Part shown: in pieces, positions 7,399 to 27,958 of the stretch
Layout: each line of letters opens with the position of its first letter
Numbering within the stretch: position 1 is the stretch's first letter
The notes under the pieces: generated by a model
The model's input: only the letters and a program-made list of their open reading frames with translations
Database searches by the model: none
What the model was told of the DNA's origin: nothing
Sequence record: ON287375.1
Direction: 5' to 3' (one strand)
Length of the DNA: 64,000 bases
Program-made: the position numbers and the translations under genes

Positions 7399-7725
7399 AT
7401 GAAAATCGCTTCAGAAAAGATTACTCGCACTATCGTTAAACATGCCAATACCTTCGCTCAGTTTGACTCTAAACTGGGTTCTACTATTTCCCTGATGCTG
7501 CGCGATGGTGATACTAATCGTTGCCTGCAATCCAAACTCTACGGTTATAACTCTTCTCAAACCGGGATCATTATCGAAGTTCGTATTGACGGTCTGTTGT
7601 TAGATCGTGTAACTCTGACCCGTAAACATGCACAGGGGGATTTTGAACACAAGTACAAAATCGACTATGCTAAACTGTACCACATTGCAGCCAAAGCTCC
7701 AAAGAAGGCTCCAGTAGACGAATAA
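7399..7725 (+). CDS. Hypothetical protein
   Basis: SD AGGA; 108 aa. Confidence 0.8.
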   Translation: MKIASEKITRTIVKHANTFAQFDSKLGSTISLMLRDGDTNRCLQSKLYGYNSSQTGIIIEVRIDGLLLDRVTLTRKHAQGDFEHKYKIDYAKLYHIAAKAPKKAPVDE

Positions 7726-7734
7726 GGTTGAGAT

Positions 7735-8193
7735 ATGCAACGATATGAATTCGCTATTGAGAAGGGTACGCTAGTGGTACACGATCAGGTGACTAATGGA
7801 TCGTTGCGTATCATTTTCAAACCGTTAGGTAAGCCAGAAATCAATCCTGCTTTAGAAGCCTGGAATGATTTAGAAACTGCACTTAACTCAGGTAAGTTAA
7901 TCCTGGGTTTGTTTGGTGTTAACACAATTACCGAACGTAAGGGCTTTAAGTTAGAAGGTGAGGTCGTGCTGTCATCATCTCACCTTTATGACTGTGAAGT
8001 TCGCAATGGTAATTTACACATGGTGTCTTTCAAACAGAAAGCACTTATCTCAGAATCCACATTGCGATATATGGGTTCTAACAGATTCGGTTTAGTAGCA
8101 TTTAAAGATTGCTTCTTCAAAACCAACCCTGAGACTGGTTACTTTAAAAGAACCACCTCTTACTTTAAAAACGAATTAGTGACTGGAGTCTAA
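7735..8193 (+). CDS. Hypothetical beta-rich protein (paralog of 8195-8698)
   Basis: VHDQVTNGSLRI...INPALEAWNDL...KLILGLFG aligns by eye with the next protein. Confidence 0.8.
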   Translation: MQRYEFAIEKGTLVVHDQVTNGSLRIIFKPLGKPEINPALEAWNDLETALNSGKLILGLFGVNTITERKGFKLEGEVVLSSSHLYDCEVRNGNLHMVSFKQKALISESTLRYMGSNRFGLVAFKDCFFKTNPETGYFKRTTSYFKNELVTGV

Positions 8194-8194
8194 A

Positions 8195-8698
8195 ATGAAA
8201 AATACCCCTATTGGTCGTTGGAATGTAATCCTTGATGGTAAACTGATCAAAGTCATTGATCGCCAAACTGGTGGTGAATTGAATATCCACACTACCCACC
8301 ACGATGACCCAGGCGAGAATGATCTCAATCCGACTATCGAGATCATCAATGAACTCTCTGAACAATTGGCCGAACAGCGCCTGATTCTTCAGCTGATCGG
8401 TAAAGAAAACAACATCTATGTAACCGGAACTAATATGGTTCTGGACGGTAGCCTTTCTCTGCATCGCGTTGATCTTGCTAACCCGCACCTTACTGATGTG
8501 GAGCTTCGTATTGTGGATACTCGCGAAGCTAAACAAGTTCGCATGAACAAAACGACCATGTATGAATTCACTTCACCTAAGCTTGAAGGTGAACTTCATA
8601 TTTCACACTGCCATTACACTGGTGTAGCTAAACCGCGTGTTACTTCTTCCCGCACTGAGTTCTATCTGAACGAATGCCGTAATGGAGATATGTGGTAA
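8195..8698 (+). CDS. Hypothetical beta-rich protein (paralog of 7735-8193)
   Basis: VIDRQTGGELNI...LNPTIEIINEL...RLILQLIG; SD GGAG. Confidence 0.8.
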   Translation: MKNTPIGRWNVILDGKLIKVIDRQTGGELNIHTTHHDDPGENDLNPTIEIINELSEQLAEQRLILQLIGKENNIYVTGTNMVLDGSLSLHRVDLANPHLTDVELRIVDTREAKQVRMNKTTMYEFTSPKLEGELHISHCHYTGVAKPRVTSSRTEFYLNECRNGDMW

Positions 8699-19799: not shown

Positions 19800-19836
19800 A
19801 TTTGAAGTCTATATTATTAGAGTGTATAAGGAAACA
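19800..19836 (+). promoter_or_regulatory. Putative early promoter of chmA
   Basis: TTTGAAGTCTATATTATTAGAGTGTATAAGGAAACA; 26 nt identical to the copy at 50205-50230. Confidence 0.8.
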
Positions 19837-19901: not shown

Positions 19902-21818
19902 ATGTCTCTCGATAACAACATGAACGCAAACAACGCTAACTCTTCTTCTAACAACAACGCTGGTAAAAACACTATGCAATCTTCAAATGCTCTGTTCGGT
20001 CTGCTGGGTGAAGCGAACCTGTTCTCTTCTACTCACTCTATCGCTGAAGTAAAAGACATCCAGAAATCTCTGGAAGAAACCATCAAGTACCTGCAGAAGA
20101 ACACTGCATCTCAGTCTCAGAAAATCTCTCTGCCGACTCTGGTTCAGTCTATTACTTCTGACATCAGTTCTCAGCTGCCAGGTCTGACCATCTCCACTGT
20201 GATCGACGGCACCCGCTACGTCATGCCAGTTCTGTTCTACAAAACTGGTGTTACTGAAGCTACCGAAGTGATCATGCTGGCTAACGAAAACATGCCTCGC
20301 GGTATCGCTAAAGTACCAGCGTCCTTCATGAACCAGGAACTGATGGAGAAGATCAAATCTACTTCTGCATTCCACGAAGGCCAGCAGATGAAGAACGTTG
20401 TCATCATCGCTCCTTCTGTAGTTAACCTGGAAACCTTCATCAAGAACGCAGTGAAAGCTGAAGACGTTGTTCCAGAAGTTCGTACCAACCTGCTGAAAGA
20501 GTGGAACACTGCTCTGTACAACCTGGTTGTTCTGGAAGTTACCAAACAAGGCGTTCAGTTCCCAACTCCGTTCAAAGACGGTAAACTGTTCGGTAAAGAT
20601 GATGCAGCTGTGGCTCGTATCGAACCTGTAAACCGTGCGACCATCGACGGCAAACCAGTTCCATACAACCTGGCAGTTAAACTGCACACTACCAACAAAA
20701 ACAACACGCAGAACATGAACAGCAACAACACTCGTTCTATCTGCACCACTTACCTGAAAGTGTCTCTGGAAGCAATGTCTCAGGCTCAGTTCCTGCAGGC
20801 TCGTCAGCTGCGTCCAGGCGTTAACGTAGGCCCACTGGTTCCAGTAATCTCTACTGGTATCACTATCCCTGGCGAAACCCTGAACAACAACAACTCCATG
20901 CTGACTGCTCTGCTGGGTCTGTACGCATCTATCGGTGCAAACCAGATGCAGTTCTTCTCTGAAGCATTCCGTGGTAAAGAAGTTGGTCATTCCGGTAACC
21001 TGGGTAACTTCAACAACTACCTGACTCAGATGTTGGGCGGTGCTTACGGCACCAGCCAGATGATCACCGATAAGAACATCACCAACGCTGCACAGGTAAA
21101 CCAGTGGCTGAACAGCTACGTTGCTCCGAACGCAGTATACGTTCTGGATCTGGCATCCTTCACCGAAGACGTTTCTAACTCCGACTTCTGGTGGAACATC
21201 ATCGGTCAGCCTAATGGTTCTACTTACCATAAAGCTCTGATCAACCTGATGGACGTTCTGTCTAACAAAGCTTTCAGCCGCATCATCTCTGAAAATGCTT
21301 CCAAAGGTCAGAACCGTGATCCTCGTAAAGACTGGACTGCAGGTGATGCAATCCTGAAACCTACTCCGATCATGATGCCTGCTGGTATCGCTCGTGGTAA
21401 AGATGGCAAATGGTTCGACCTGGCAGAAGTTGACGGCATGTTCCTGCGTCAGGAAAACTACTACGGTCAAAACGAACCAGCTGTTAACCAATACCTGGGT
21501 CTGATCAACGGCGCAACCGGTACCGATCCAAAAGCTCGTCAGTACGCTATCTACAACCTGCTGAATCAACTGTTCGATACCAACGTAATCATCGAAGGTT
21601 GGAAACGTCGTTTCGTATGGGAAGATGCGTTCTTCAACACCGCAGCACGCGCAATGGCAACTGCTGGTGCAATGACCATGTCTGCAAGCAACAACGTATC
21701 CGCATGGCAGGTACAACACAGCAACGATTACCTGAACTACACTATGTCTGCAGTTCTGCAGCAGGGTATGCAGGTAGGCGCAATGGGTGGCTTCTCTGGC
21801 GCATACACCCACTACTAA
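19902..21818 (+). CDS. chmA: Chimallin, major phage-nucleus shell protein
   Basis: 638 aa; extreme high-expression codon bias; sits between the divergent gp52-like gene and RNAP beta-prime as in phiKZ gp54/201phi2-1 gp105; own promoter and terminator. Confidence 0.9.
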   Translation: MSLDNNMNANNANSSSNNNAGKNTMQSSNALFGLLGEANLFSSTHSIAEVKDIQKSLEETIKYLQKNTASQSQKISLPTLVQSITSDISSQLPGLTISTVIDGTRYVMPVLFYKTGVTEATEVIMLANENMPRGIAKVPASFMNQELMEKIKSTSAFHEGQQMKNVVIIAPSVVNLETFIKNAVKAEDVVPEVRTNLLKEWNTALYNLVVLEVTKQGVQFPTPFKDGKLFGKDDAAVARIEPVNRATIDGKPVPYNLAVKLHTTNKNNTQNMNSNNTRSICTTYLKVSLEAMSQAQFLQARQLRPGVNVGPLVPVISTGITIPGETLNNNNSMLTALLGLYASIGANQMQFFSEAFRGKEVGHSGNLGNFNNYLTQMLGGAYGTSQMITDKNITNAAQVNQWLNSYVAPNAVYVLDLASFTEDVSNSDFWWNIIGQPNGSTYHKALINLMDVLSNKAFSRIISENASKGQNRDPRKDWTAGDAILKPTPIMMPAGIARGKDGKWFDLAEVDGMFLRQENYYGQNEPAVNQYLGLINGATGTDPKARQYAIYNLLNQLFDTNVIIEGWKRRFVWEDAFFNTAARAMATAGAMTMSASNNVSAWQVQHSNDYLNYTMSAVLQQGMQVGAMGGFSGAYTHY

Positions 21819-24174: not shown

Positions 24175-24182
24175 CTGAAATA

Positions 24183-24213
24183 GCAATGGGGTGGAAACAC
24201 CCTGTTGCTTTTA
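24183..24213 (+). terminator. Rho-independent terminator
   Basis: GCAATGGGGTG-gaaa-CACCCTGTTGC-TTTTA. Confidence 0.75.
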
Positions 24214-24243: not shown

Positions 24244-24699
24244 ATGATTTTTGATACTGAACGTATGGATGAGTGTTTGAAGTCTGAACGCATTACTTGT
24301 CCTCCAGGATTATCAAGAGAACAGAAACGGACTTTTATCATTCAACATGCTACTGATAAAGAGGGTAATGTGGATATTCATAAAGACGGTCTAGTCGTTG
24401 TCAAACGTAAGTCTGATGATCTTAATAACTTTAAAGCCTATAACCTTAAAGGAGGTGACAAAGTTGCTCGCATCAACTTCCAAAATGGATTTGTGGATGA
24501 ACAAACTGGTGCCAATGGTTTGACTAACGAAGCACTCATTGCAATTGCACTGAATCGCTTAGAAGGTCAGAACAAAGGTAAGTTCCAGTCCATCCATAAT
24601 GATAAAGCTATCGAATGTTTACGTGGTGCTTTGGTTGCACTTAAAGCTCGCGTAGATGACAGAATAGCTCGTGGTGTTTCTAACACTGATGCGGAGTAA
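24244..24699 (+). CDS. tad1: Tad1-like immune-signal sponge (anti-Thoeris/anti-CBASS)
   Basis: INFQNG...[15 protein letters not shown]...[12 protein letters not shown]...[17 protein letters not shown] aligns by eye with Tad1 IKFQKG...GVIDSDLLEIVRDRL...GPFSSRENACAL...ALMWMNRRVEDRIERNV. Confidence 0.8.
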
Positions 24700-25167
24700 A
24701 TGATGTCTAACTTTGGTTACTGTGAATTACAGGTTGACCTTAACACCGGGATTAAGATTCAAAAGGCCATCGACTCTGCTGAGGTTGAACAACCTTTAGA
24801 TCTTATTCCTGCCAACAAGCTCCATGCTACAATAATGTACGATGAACGGAATCCTGATATCTTCCCTTCTAAATCTAAGTCGGTTTACAAGGCCAAGATT
24901 AAAGGCGTAAAGACTTTAGGAGAACCTGGTTCTAAGTGGTATGCGGCAGCTTTGGTACTGGAGTCCCCAGCTATCCAAAACCGCTTCAAGCAGCTACTGG
25001 ATGAAGGTTTCCAACATTCTTATGACGACCTTCTGTTACACGTATCATTATGCTACGGTAAAGATACCGATATCCTTGCACCTATATTAGAGAAGATGTT
25101 GGCGGAAGGTAAACTTCCTGAAACAATTACTCTGTGCAATGAGACTTGGGAACACTGTGGTATTTAA
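24700..25167 (+). CDS. acb1: Acb1-like 2H phosphodiesterase (anti-CBASS nuclease)
   Basis: Two HxT/S motifs, KLHATIMY and HSYDDLLLHVSLCY, matching T4 57B KIHSTICY and HDFDDYTPHITLSY; similar length. Confidence 0.85.
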   Translation: MMSNFGYCELQVDLNTGIKIQKAIDSAEVEQPLDLIPANKLHATIMYDERNPDIFPSKSKSVYKAKIKGVKTLGEPGSKWYAAALVLESPAIQNRFKQLLDEGFQHSYDDLLLHVSLCYGKDTDILAPILEKMLAEGKLPETITLCNETWEHCGI

Positions 25168-25239
25168 GCATGGGCGCTGTAAGGATGATTTAGTAGAGGG
25201 ATCTGGTAGGAGAGTGGATTCATATTCACTTGTATTTCA

Positions 25240-25265
25240 TTTCAGACCTATATTACTTAAGTGAT
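25240..25265 (+). promoter_or_regulatory. Putative early promoter
   Basis: TTTCAGACCTATATTACTTAAGTGAT contains the exact phiKZ early consensus TATATTAC. Confidence 0.75.
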
Positions 25266-25487: not shown

Positions 25488-25520
25488 CAGGATCTCCCGT
25501 AATTGGGAGATCCTGTTATT
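25488..25520 (+). terminator. Rho-independent terminator
   Basis: CAGGATCTCCC-gtaatt-GGGAGATCCTG-TTATT. Confidence 0.8.
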
Positions 25521-26821: not shown

Positions 26822-27958
26822 ATGAAAGAAAATTTCTTCGGTGTACAGACCACGGACCATCACTGTCTGCACCCACATACTCCAACTCGTCATATCTTGG
26901 GTAACCTTGATCAGTTCTACTATAAGGAACTGAACCTTGACGAAGTTGACTTTAATATATTAACTGGTGACTTCTTCCATGATTTAGCACCAGCTAATGA
27001 TCCAAACATGATGCTCTGTCAGCGCTGGATTAAAAAGCACCTTCAAATATGTCATGATAAGAAAGTTCATGTTCGTATACTTGAAGGGACTTCTTCCCAT
27101 GACTGGGGTCAACCTGAAGTATTTGATATCCTTAAACCTAAGGATACTCCGTACATTAAGTACGTTAACACACTGTCTATTGAGTATATTCCAGAGCTAG
27201 ATATCAACGTTATGTACGTCCCTGATAACTTCGGTCATAAGTCTACTGAACTTATTTACGAAGATGCTCTGAAACTTCTGGCTGGCGCAGGTCTTAAACA
27301 AGTTGACTTTATTCTGTTGCATGGTGGATTTGATTATCAACTTCCTCCAATTGCTAATAAGAATGGATCTTTGTATGATTCAGTCAAATGGTCTGCTTTA
27401 GCCAAGAAAGCCATATTCAGTGGTCATATTCATAAACCAAGTCATAAACTGAATATCTATTGTGGCGGTAGCTTTGACCGTACAGCCTTTGGTGAAATGC
27501 ATCCTAAAGGTGGTTATAAGTTCTGGTGGGGTAAGGATGATTTTAAGGCAGAGTTCTGGGAGAACAAGAATGCCTTGATCTATGACAAAATCCTTATCAA
27601 TCGTGAGATGGGTGCTAAAGAGATCCAAAGGGAACTGAATAACTACTTAGCTAAGAACCCACCTAAGAACACACATATTCGTTTGGTTGGTGGTTTGGCC
27701 TCCGTTACCGGTTCTTTAATTAACGATTATAAAGAACAATACCCTCAGTATCATTTTGATCTGGATAATGTTAAAGAGGATAACATCGAAGTTGATGATA
27801 CCTTGTATACACCAGAAATGTACAAAGGGGTATCTCTGACCAAGTTGAACCTTCAGGATAGTTTGTTTAACTTCATGGAGTCTACCTTACAGCAGAATGA
27901 CGATATTGATCGTGATTTGTTGAAGGAACTCCTATCAGAGGTAATGGAGAATGATTGA
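26822..27958 (+). CDS. sbcD: SbcD/Mre11-like metallophosphoesterase nuclease
   Basis: Motifs TTDHH, TGDFFH, EGTSSHD, LHGG, SGHIH. Confidence 0.9.
   Translation: MKENFFGVQTTDHHCLHPHTPTRHILGNLDQFYYKELNLDEVDFNILTGDFFHDLAPANDPNMMLCQRWIKKHLQICHDKKVHVRILEGTSSHDWGQPEVFDILKPKDTPYIKYVNTLSIEYIPELDINVMYVPDNFGHKSTELIYEDALKLLAGAGLKQVDFILLHGGFDYQLPPIANKNGSLYDSVKWSALAKKAIFSGHIHKPSHKLNIYCGGSFDRTAFGEMHPKGGYKFWWGKDDFKAEFWENKNALIYDKILINREMGAKEIQRELNNYLAKNPPKNTHIRLVGGLASVTGSLINDYKEQYPQYHFDLDNVKEDNIEVDDTLYTPEMYKGVSLTKLNLQDSLFNFMESTLQQNDDIDRDLLKELLSEVMEND

Follow-up and report, generated by a model that had tools for sequence, protein, structure and literature searches.

A coupled Tad1-like and Acb1-like gene pair in the core block of Serratia phage Yubaba and its relatives, a likely counter-defence operon against nucleotide immune signals

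Results

The gene pair and its junction

The stretch of DNA analysed here (64,000 nucleotides; hereafter the window) matches Serratia phage vB_SmaM-Yubaba at 100% identity (ON287375.1, genus Petsuvirus, a 256-kb phage). Two adjacent plus-strand genes in it, both "hypothetical" in GenBank, are the subject of this work: gene 1 (YUBABA_02250, positions 24244-24699), encoding a candidate Tad1-family sponge of 151 amino acids (aa), and gene 2 (YUBABA_02260, 24700-25167), encoding a candidate Acb1-family 2H phosphodiesterase of 155 aa. The junction reads GAG TAA ATG ATG (24694-24705), which leaves no gap to the first ATG of gene 2 (24700) and 3 nucleotides (nt) to the second (24703). The GenBank entry takes the second ATG as the start of gene 2 (154 aa), and that methionine is invariant in an alignment of 45 sequences; whichever ATG is used, the two genes are tightly coupled. 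An initial annotation of the window had described two genes joined by TAA-ATG without a gap, inside a core block of chmA, RNA polymerase (RNAP) and SbcD genes, and that description stands: both are open reading frames (ORFs) on the plus strand, the junction is read directly, and around the pair lie ChmA (19902-21818), the end of the RNAP beta' gene (23506) and SbcD (26822-27958). ChmA (chimallin) is a 638-aa protein with homologues that RefSeq calls 'nuclear shell protein'.

Gene 1 is related to Tad1 anti-Thoeris proteins

A phmmer search of gene 1 against Protein Data Bank (PDB) sequences returned Tad1 proteins only, over residues 72-149, with E about 8e-6 for CbTad1 and CmTad1 and 6e-4 for phiKZ gp184. 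A profile of its close homologues reached CmTad1 at 1e-20, CbTad1 at 7e-18 and phiKZ gp184 at 1.3e-12, and gave no Acb2 match; gene 1 also matches phrog_2428 at E 1.4e-20. The alignment-based AlphaFold2 (AF2) model, with a predicted local distance difference test (pLDDT) score of 84.8, begins with two short helices of low confidence (residues 5-35), followed by four strands (42-79) and a pair of long helices (95-109 and 117-143). The initial annotation had proposed a comparison with Tad1 structures as a check, and in Foldseek against the PDB the top 20 matches are all Tad1 (E 3e-7 to 8e-5, target template modelling (TM) score 0.69-0.76), the next match lying at E 0.15. The motif pattern that it had noticed (FQ.G, G.F, N, RV.DRI.R) is complete, as NFQNG at residues 78-82, GKF at 112-114, N119 and RVDDRIAR at 136-143, and aligns with the motifs of CbTad1. 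Residues F79, Q80, N91, G92, E96 and R105, which are invariant family-wide, are intact in Yubaba and in all two-gene relatives. Judged by sequence comparison and predicted fold, gene 1 is a Tad1-family protein.

To see what the ligand pocket retains, the residues tested by mutation in CbTad1 by Li et al. were mapped onto the alignment of chimallivirus homologues. In CbTad1, F82, N92, R109 and R113 belong to the pocket for glycocyclic ADP-ribose (gcADPR) and cyclic dinucleotides, R90 and T97 to the cyclic trinucleotide site, and W105 to the hexamer interface; the trinucleotide site and the hexamer interface are properties of some Tad1 proteins only and do not define the family. The pocket residues N92, R109 and R113 correspond to Yubaba N119, R136 and R140 and are kept in other chimalliviruses. 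F82 is replaced by Q109 in Yubaba; the Aeromonas phages have F there (D3 has C), and phiKZ has Y. R90, T97 and W105 correspond to I117, E124 and A132, and all three are lost in every chimallivirus examined, phiKZ gp184 included. By alignment, then, gene 1 keeps three of the four gcADPR/dinucleotide pocket residues and neither of the two trinucleotide-site residues. It is plausible that its product is a gcADPR/dinucleotide sponge, and it is not expected to bind cyclic triadenylate (cA3) at the canonical site. With I117 and E124 in place of R90 and T97, it would fall to Acb1 to provide any cA3 coverage, whether against type III systems of the cyclic oligonucleotide-based antiphage signalling system (CBASS) or against type III CRISPR-NucC.

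Gene 2 is related to Acb1 anti-CBASS nucleases

The Pfam model PF23474 (Acb1) matches gene 2 over residues 7-123 at E 1.5e-13 and 51.1 bits (cutoff 27); NCBIfam and PADLOC scans of the gene gave no match. Its AF2 model has a pLDDT of 93.8, and the comparison with Acb1 structures, which had been suggested together with that for Tad1, placed Acb1 first among the fold matches. The best PDB match in Foldseek is the 'Acb1' phosphodiesterase of Burkholderia phage BCSR5 (9q2y, E 4e-9, TM 0.77/0.74), Acb1 of Erwinia phage FBB1 (7t26) matches at E 7e-7 with a target TM of 0.73, and LigT, plant cyclic phosphodiesterase (CPDase) and Usb1 come no better than E 5e-4, at TM 0.4-0.58. The best named matches in BFVD are entries called 'Anti-CBASS protein Acb1' from pEt-SU, fHe-Yen9-04, RisingSun and Miami.

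Both 2H motifs reported by the initial annotation as HAT and HVS lie in an Acb1-like context. The first, H42-A-T44 (24823-24831, plus strand), aligns with HTT of FBB1 Acb1, and the second, H114-V-S116 (25039-25047, plus strand), with HIT; none of the four residues H42, T44, H114 and S116 varies among 45 relatives. The catalytic role of the HxT/HxT motifs of Acb1 is known from Hobbs et al. In the 45-sequence alignment of the gene 2 clade Y7, W80, Y108, E148 and W150 are likewise invariant or nearly so; the pairwise alignment with 7t26 spans residues 32-120 only, and these five are candidate equivalents of FBB1 Y12, W74, F107, E141 and W147. Family model, predicted fold and catalytic motifs agree that gene 2 is an Acb1-family 2H phosphodiesterase.

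The records of CBB, XbC2, pEt-SU, pEa_SNUABM_12/47/50 and ZPAH34, found by tblastn, label their Acb1-like homologues 'structural protein' or 'putative structural protein'. From these labels alone, packaging of some Acb1-like enzymes in virions is a possibility.

The pair occupies a fixed slot in the core block of several phage genera

The gene-neighbourhood survey that had been proposed for the pair was made on GenBank phages; a scan of IMG/VR with the Acb1 alignment gave 8 loci only. The core block runs in the order DNA polymerase, a minus-strand virion gene, ChmA, RNAP beta', a 222-aa protein, a slot, a small membrane ORF, p135, p278, SbcD and three further genes. This order is common to Yubaba, OBP, pEt-SU, AH04, Kc263, Survivor, SXP01 and the Aeromonas phages, and also to EL, Miami, Aphrodite1 and RisingSun, and the variable part of the block is the slot. 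A Tad1-like gene followed by an Acb1-like gene, with spacing from a 1-nt overlap to a 9-nt gap, fills the slot in Yubaba, Sureiya, N1M2, OBP, SXP01 and the Aeromonas phages PS1, D3, AerS_266 and ZPAH34, and tblastn coordinates give the same arrangement for PS2, D6, D9, LAh10, pAEv1810, AVP1, ACP1, CF8 and AhC3_1. The gap is 0 nt in N1M2, 3 in SXP01, 9 in OBP, 8 in PS1 and 1 in D3, and the genes overlap by 1 nt in AerS_266 and ZPAH34. AH04, Kc263 and four metagenomic jumbo-phage contigs have a single fusion protein of 241-255 aa in the slot, and pEt-SU and Survivor have Acb1 only. The slot is empty in EL (locus L023, 14707-14807) and holds unrelated small ORFs in Miami (L024, 14682-16857, plus a transposase), Aphrodite1 (L025, 13688-14366) and RisingSun (L026, 13320-14225). 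RisingSun and Miami have an Acb1 elsewhere in the genome, outside the slot. The survey thus bore out a pair in a fixed slot across several phage genera.

OBP shares 72% identity with Yubaba in ChmA, 60% in the Tad1-like protein and 65% in the Acb1-like protein, and the Aeromonas phages share 42-49%, 38-43% and 42-47%, respectively. The GC content of the pair equals that of its flanks. Since the identities fall in step with ChmA and the GC content is flank-like, the pair is best understood as old and vertically inherited, with no recent import.

In phiKZ, the Tad1 protein gp184 stands alone, far from chmA, and no Acb1 was found within 15 kb of it. The phiKZ protein gp185 was considered as a hidden Acb1 and was supported neither by Pfam nor by the clade hidden Markov model. 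The Tad1-like genes of Shewanella phage Thanatos-1 and Burkholderia phage FLC9 have no Acb1-like neighbour either, which makes the pairing look confined to this branch of chimalliviruses. The FLC9 protein, gp131, resembles phiKZ gp184 (230 aa; L016, 13470-14162), whose N-terminal part anchors in the capsid, and long N-terminal Tad1 extensions may be a recurring delivery device of jumbo phages.

The RNAP beta' gene beside chmA is itself split into a large piece and one of about 60 aa, 0.3-1.4 kb apart, in Aeromonas phages, EL, Miami and Aphrodite1 (L003, 2951-5234; L015, 1730-3913; L020, 2008-3919; L019, 1-2694; L023, 11002-14050; L024, 10977-14011; L025, 11006-13006). An HNH endonuclease lies between the pieces in PS1 and EL, and Yubaba, OBP and RisingSun have the gene in one piece. 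The split suggests an intron or an intein-like insertion.

Sponge-nuclease fusions

The fusion proteins (AH04 gp67, L012, 4740-5465; Kc263, L013, 4728-5465; and four metagenomic loci, L006-L009, near 7700-8468) consist of a shortened Tad1-like domain and a complete Acb1 domain, and are labelled merely as phosphoesterase or RNA cyclic phosphodiesterase in their records. An hhalign comparison shows their N-terminal part, about 90 aa long, to be a homologue of the Tad1-like core (probability 98.6%, E 1.4e-15). The FQxG loop (Q80/G82), N119 and R136 are missing from the fused Tad1-like domains.

An N-terminal module and a possible internal start in gene 1

Gene 1 has two parts, both on the plus strand. 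Residues 1-42 (24244-24369), here called module A, form two short helices at pLDDT 63-73 that are not part of canonical Tad1, and residues 43-151 (24370-24699) form the Tad1 core of four beta strands and a two-helix hairpin. Module A matches phrog_17259 at E 7e-4, and its consensus, covering about the first 40 residues, is xDxERMxxALxSExIxxPxGLSxEExRxFIxxHA. The module, of about 37 aa, is also found by itself in proteins of 48-49 aa, repeated in tandem, and, just upstream of fusions, as a small ORF of its own (L006, 7565-7762; L007, 7577-7768; L009, 7568-7768). On this distribution of homologous sequences, it is a separate, mobile mini-domain. A 764-aa repeat protein (P0166), the top match of a search with module A only, looks spurious as a homologue.

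The start of the core coincides exactly with a possible translation start. A Shine-Dalgarno-like AGAGGG (24360-24365) lies 5 nt upstream of a GTG at 24370, which is codon 43; GAGG or GGAG with an ATG is found at the equivalent codon in N1M2 (L017), OBP (L002) and SXP01 (L018), and homologues of 107 aa begin exactly at the core-start residue (the V43 position). Internal initiation may thus yield a core-only Tad1 beside the 151-aa form.

Transcription signals and a downstream membrane ORF

The terminator that the initial annotation had placed at 24183 is present as a strong terminator-like hairpin on the plus strand at 24182-24209, with a 12-bp stem, dG -21.2 kcal/mol, z -5.1 and a following TTTTATT. 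It ends 34 nt upstream of gene 1 and closes the unit of RNAP beta' and the 222-aa gene; a T-run also stands at the equivalent place in N1M2 and OBP. The next terminator-like hairpin on the plus strand, at 25488-25515 (12-bp stem, dG -23.1 kcal/mol, z -6.0), is the probable end of the transcription unit. Between the pair and this hairpin lies YUBABA_02270 (25312-25479, plus strand), a GenBank coding sequence of 55 aa with one predicted hydrophobic membrane helix. A small membrane ORF is kept downstream of Acb1 in relatives; it stands at this position in OBP, N1M2, AH04, Kc263, Survivor, the Aeromonas phages, three of the metagenomic loci (L006, L007, L009) and RisingSun, and the Survivor record labels its homologue 'membrane protein'. 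A hairpin scan of the interval between gene 2 and this ORF found no terminator (z 0.1). For that reason the unit may hold three genes instead of two, with YUBABA_02270 possibly co-transcribed with the Tad1-like/Acb1-like pair.

A promoter had also been proposed at 25240, and this claim was not confirmed: the sigma-70-like match there reaches just 9 of 12 positions, and such matches are rarer in the region than in shuffled sequence (4 versus 7.1). Phages related to phiKZ transcribe with their own polymerases, and the sigma-70 scan is uninformative for that reason. Of the 11 plus-strand copies of the motif TATATTA in the window, 7 are intergenic, a weak enrichment between genes, and these include copies at 19810, before chmA, and at 25249; the motif is not present upstream of gene 1. 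It is possible that TATATTA is a phage-type promoter element, in which case a promoter could lie near the 25240 region. TATATTAC was rejected as a recurring promoter, with 1 copy in the 64-kb window versus 2.8 expected. Other short motifs between genes include GGGTAGGG, with 5 copies in the window, all intergenic (for example 25207-25212), and GGTAGG, intergenic in 9 of 12 window copies; CCCTAC is enriched as well. These three are probably arms of hairpin terminators.

Discussion

What might a sponge-like and a nuclease-like gene do together beside chmA? A functional link is the simplest reading of the same gene order, the tight spacing and the fusions, and we consider it likely, from sequence, predicted fold and analogy with characterised proteins, that the two genes form a counter-defence operon aimed at diffusible nucleotide immune signals. 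The Tad1-like protein would bind gcADPR, the signal used by Thoeris, and perhaps certain cyclic dinucleotides too, in a dimer-interface pocket containing N119, R136 and R140, and would probably not bind cyclic trinucleotides, because the trinucleotide-site and hexamer residues have been replaced. By analogy with known Acb1, the enzyme would be metal-independent and would use H42/T44 and H114/S116 to hydrolyse CBASS cyclic di- and trinucleotides at the 3'-5' bond that lies 3' of an adenosine. Published Acb1 cleaves cyclic GMP-AMP (cGAMP), cAAA and cAAG, but not 3'2'-cGAMP or cGG, and Tad1 binds 3'2'-cGAMP. The sponge could provide fast stoichiometric capture and cover ligands that the nuclease cannot cut, perhaps 3'2'-cGAMP, and the nuclease would provide catalytic clearance, including that of cA3. 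A Serratia type III CRISPR system with NucC restricts the nucleus-forming phage PCH45, and any protection from cA3-activated NucC, in CBASS type III or in Serratia type III CRISPR, would rest on Acb1. The target class would be those defences that cannot be blocked by a protein shell around the DNA. That a sponge and an eraser in one unit cover signalling immunity had been the central idea of the initial annotation; family membership, fold, adjacency and fusions speak for it, but the sponge is without the canonical trinucleotide-site residues, so that coverage of cA3 from type III CRISPR would not be expected of it.

Several observations weigh against this proposal. The Pfam scan of gene 1 returned nothing even at E 10, the Acb2/Tad1 hairpin model PF24729 not being reached, and NCBIfam and PADLOC scans of gene 1 gave no match; with these models silent, its assignment rests on the PDB sequence and profile searches and on the fold. 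With F82 replaced by Q109, the ligand range of gene 1 may differ from that of CbTad1. In pEt-SU and Survivor there is no Tad1-like gene, and in the fusions the Tad1-derived part, to judge from its missing residues, cannot act as a canonical sponge, which leaves room for a non-sponge role. A sigma-70 scan and a TATATTA search found no promoter candidate for the pair in the 34 nt between the hairpin at 24182-24209 and gene 1. Finally, 2H phosphoesterases act on many other substrates.

This last point leads to the reading that gene 2 processes RNA ends, as a 2',3'-cyclic phosphodiesterase or a LigT-like 2'-5' RNA ligase, and that its adjacency to gene 1 has no defence meaning. Public records name gene 2 homologues 'RNA ligase', 'phosphoesterase' or 'RNA 2',3'-cyclic phosphodiesterase', phrog_755, which gene 2 matches, is labelled RNA ligase, and the 2H fold is common to LigT, CPDase and Usb1, which are present among the weaker fold matches. 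The Pfam Acb1 model, however, scores well over its cutoff and is the sole 2H family that the scan reports for gene 2; Acb1 structures (E 4e-9 to 7e-7, TM 0.73-0.78) stand well ahead of the LigT, CPDase and Usb1 matches; 155 aa suits Acb1 and not LigT (about 175-185 aa); and in all genera examined this type of gene has a Tad1-family gene beside it or fused to it. We therefore regard an RNA-end role as quite improbable, and the 'RNA ligase' labels in GenBank and PHROGs reflect the 2H superfamily and are no evidence of ligase function. It is very improbable that the two are unrelated accessory genes that happen to share a permissive slot. The slot does vary in distant chimalliviruses, being empty in EL and filled by unrelated small ORFs in Miami, Aphrodite1 and RisingSun, but phages of Serratia, Klebsiella, Pseudomonas and, at 42-49% ChmA identity, Aeromonas all keep the order and the tight spacing, and independent fusion proteins exist.

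Two further readings concern gene 1. Its product could be mainly a partner or scaffold of the nuclease, which dimerises, localises or feeds Acb1 and is no independent sponge, and the retention of a fused Tad1 domain in AH04, Kc263 and four metagenomic phages, despite loss of the Q80/G82 loop, N119 and R136, fits this, as does a spacing of 0-9 nt that suggests fixed stoichiometry. Against it, N119, R136, R140 and the family-wide invariant residues are intact in Yubaba and all two-gene relatives, which points to selection on ligand binding, published Acb1 is a monomer needing no partner, and Acb1 is kept alone in pEt-SU and Survivor; a partner role is unlikely on this evidence. Alternatively, gene 1 could encode a virion-packaged, injected Tad1 like phiKZ gp184, with the N-terminal extension as capsid anchor or propeptide. 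This would be compatible with a sponge role and would change its delivery and its timing, to before phage gene expression. The extra N-terminal module of gene 1 favours such packaging, and Burkholderia jumbo phage FLC9 has a 338-aa protein, gp131 (L022, 2233-3249), with a C-terminal Tad1 domain. The extension of gene 1, however, is only about 40 aa and without similarity to the gp184 N-terminus, module A is also free-standing, as proteins of 48-49 aa and as a separate ORF, close relatives of 107-126 aa are without the extension, the OBP record marks neighbouring genes and not OBP_060 as virion proteins, and the internal Shine-Dalgarno sequence and start codon may bypass the extension. We give packaging little credence.

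Compared with known proteins, the counter-defence operon proposed here has familiar parts in a new arrangement. Gene 1 shares with CbTad1, CmTad1, SBSphiJ7 Tad1 and phiKZ gp184 the antiparallel sheet with a two-helix hairpin and the FQxG, NG, N and RxxDRxxRG motifs. Like CbTad1 it keeps the equivalents of N92, R109 and R113, differing by F82 to Q109, and like phiKZ gp184 it is without the R90/T97 trinucleotide site and W105. It differs from gp184 in that its 40-aa N-terminal module is unrelated to the capsid anchor of about 150 aa in gp184, and in that it lies beside chmA, coupled to Acb1, whereas gp184 stands alone. Gene 2 shares with the Acb1 of T4 (gene 57B), FBB1 (7T26/7T27) and BCSR5 (9Q2G/9Q2Y) a compact 2H fold of about 150 aa and an HxT/HxS tetrad, and Y7, W80, Y108 and E148-x-W150 could correspond to the base-stacking residues and lid of Acb1. 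It differs from solved Acb1 in its identity of 17-18% and in a second motif of HxS instead of HxT. T4 also carries an Acb1 nuclease and an Acb2 sponge, and resembles Yubaba in having sponge and nuclease with complementary ligand ranges in one phage; the candidate sponge of Yubaba, however, is a Tad1-type protein and no Acb2, and the two genes form one translationally coupled unit at a fixed core-genome position. Sponge-sponge fusions have been published, as Tad2-Acb4 and as the Sequestin fusions. The Yubaba pair shares with them the recognised theme of fusing or clustering anti-signalling modules, and the fusions of its relatives differ from them in joining a degenerate sponge domain to a nuclease.

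How new is the pairing? The phiKZ protein gp184 is a working Tad1, packaged and injected, and according to a 2026 review no other anti-defence protein has been described in jumbo phages. UniProt automatically names chimallivirus homologues of gene 2 Acb1, and in the GenBank record of AerS_266 the adjacent genes are labelled 'Anti-Thoeris, immune evasion protein' and 'Anti-CBASS, nuclease', an annotation on which the AerS_266 paper is silent. A limited literature search found no description of Tad1-Acb1 adjacency as a conserved coupled unit in the chimallivirus core, or of a Tad1-Acb1 fusion. The initial annotation had supposed the pairing to be undescribed in a Chimalliviridae core, and this is partly right: no paper on it was found, but the phiKZ Tad1 is published, homologues are already labelled, and a sponge together with Acb1 is known from T4. 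The genes are new members of known families; it is the conserved operon and the sponge-nuclease fusions that appear to be undescribed.

A bolder version of the proposal combines two ideas: that the Tad1-like and Acb1-like proteins are one machine, in which the sponge passes signals to the nuclease, recruits it or oligomerises it, with the repeated fusions to a degenerate Tad1 domain as an evolutionary end point, and that the slot is a general counter-defence hot spot. We see a small but real chance of this. By position, the small ORFs that fill the slot in Miami, Aphrodite1 and RisingSun are candidates for other counter-defence genes, and if the bolder version were true, they would act as new inhibitors of defences based on signalling.

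Jumbo phages that build a nucleus are protected from defences that target DNA, but those relying on diffusible nucleotide signals (Thoeris, CBASS and type III CRISPR with NucC) can still reach them. A sponge-nuclease unit at a fixed core place in the Yubaba/OBP/N1M2 group, SXP01 and the Aeromonas jumbo phages points to counter-signalling as an old component of how these phages live. With just two genes, the pair is a simple system for studying the division of ligand space between a sponge and a nuclease, and the fusions with a pocket-less Tad1 domain, which would be the first sponge-nuclease fusions as far as our literature search reached, raise the question of what job the retained domain has. 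Whether a candidate therapeutic phage for Serratia, Klebsiella or Aeromonas has the unit, has it fused or is without it may predict its host range on strains with Thoeris or CBASS.

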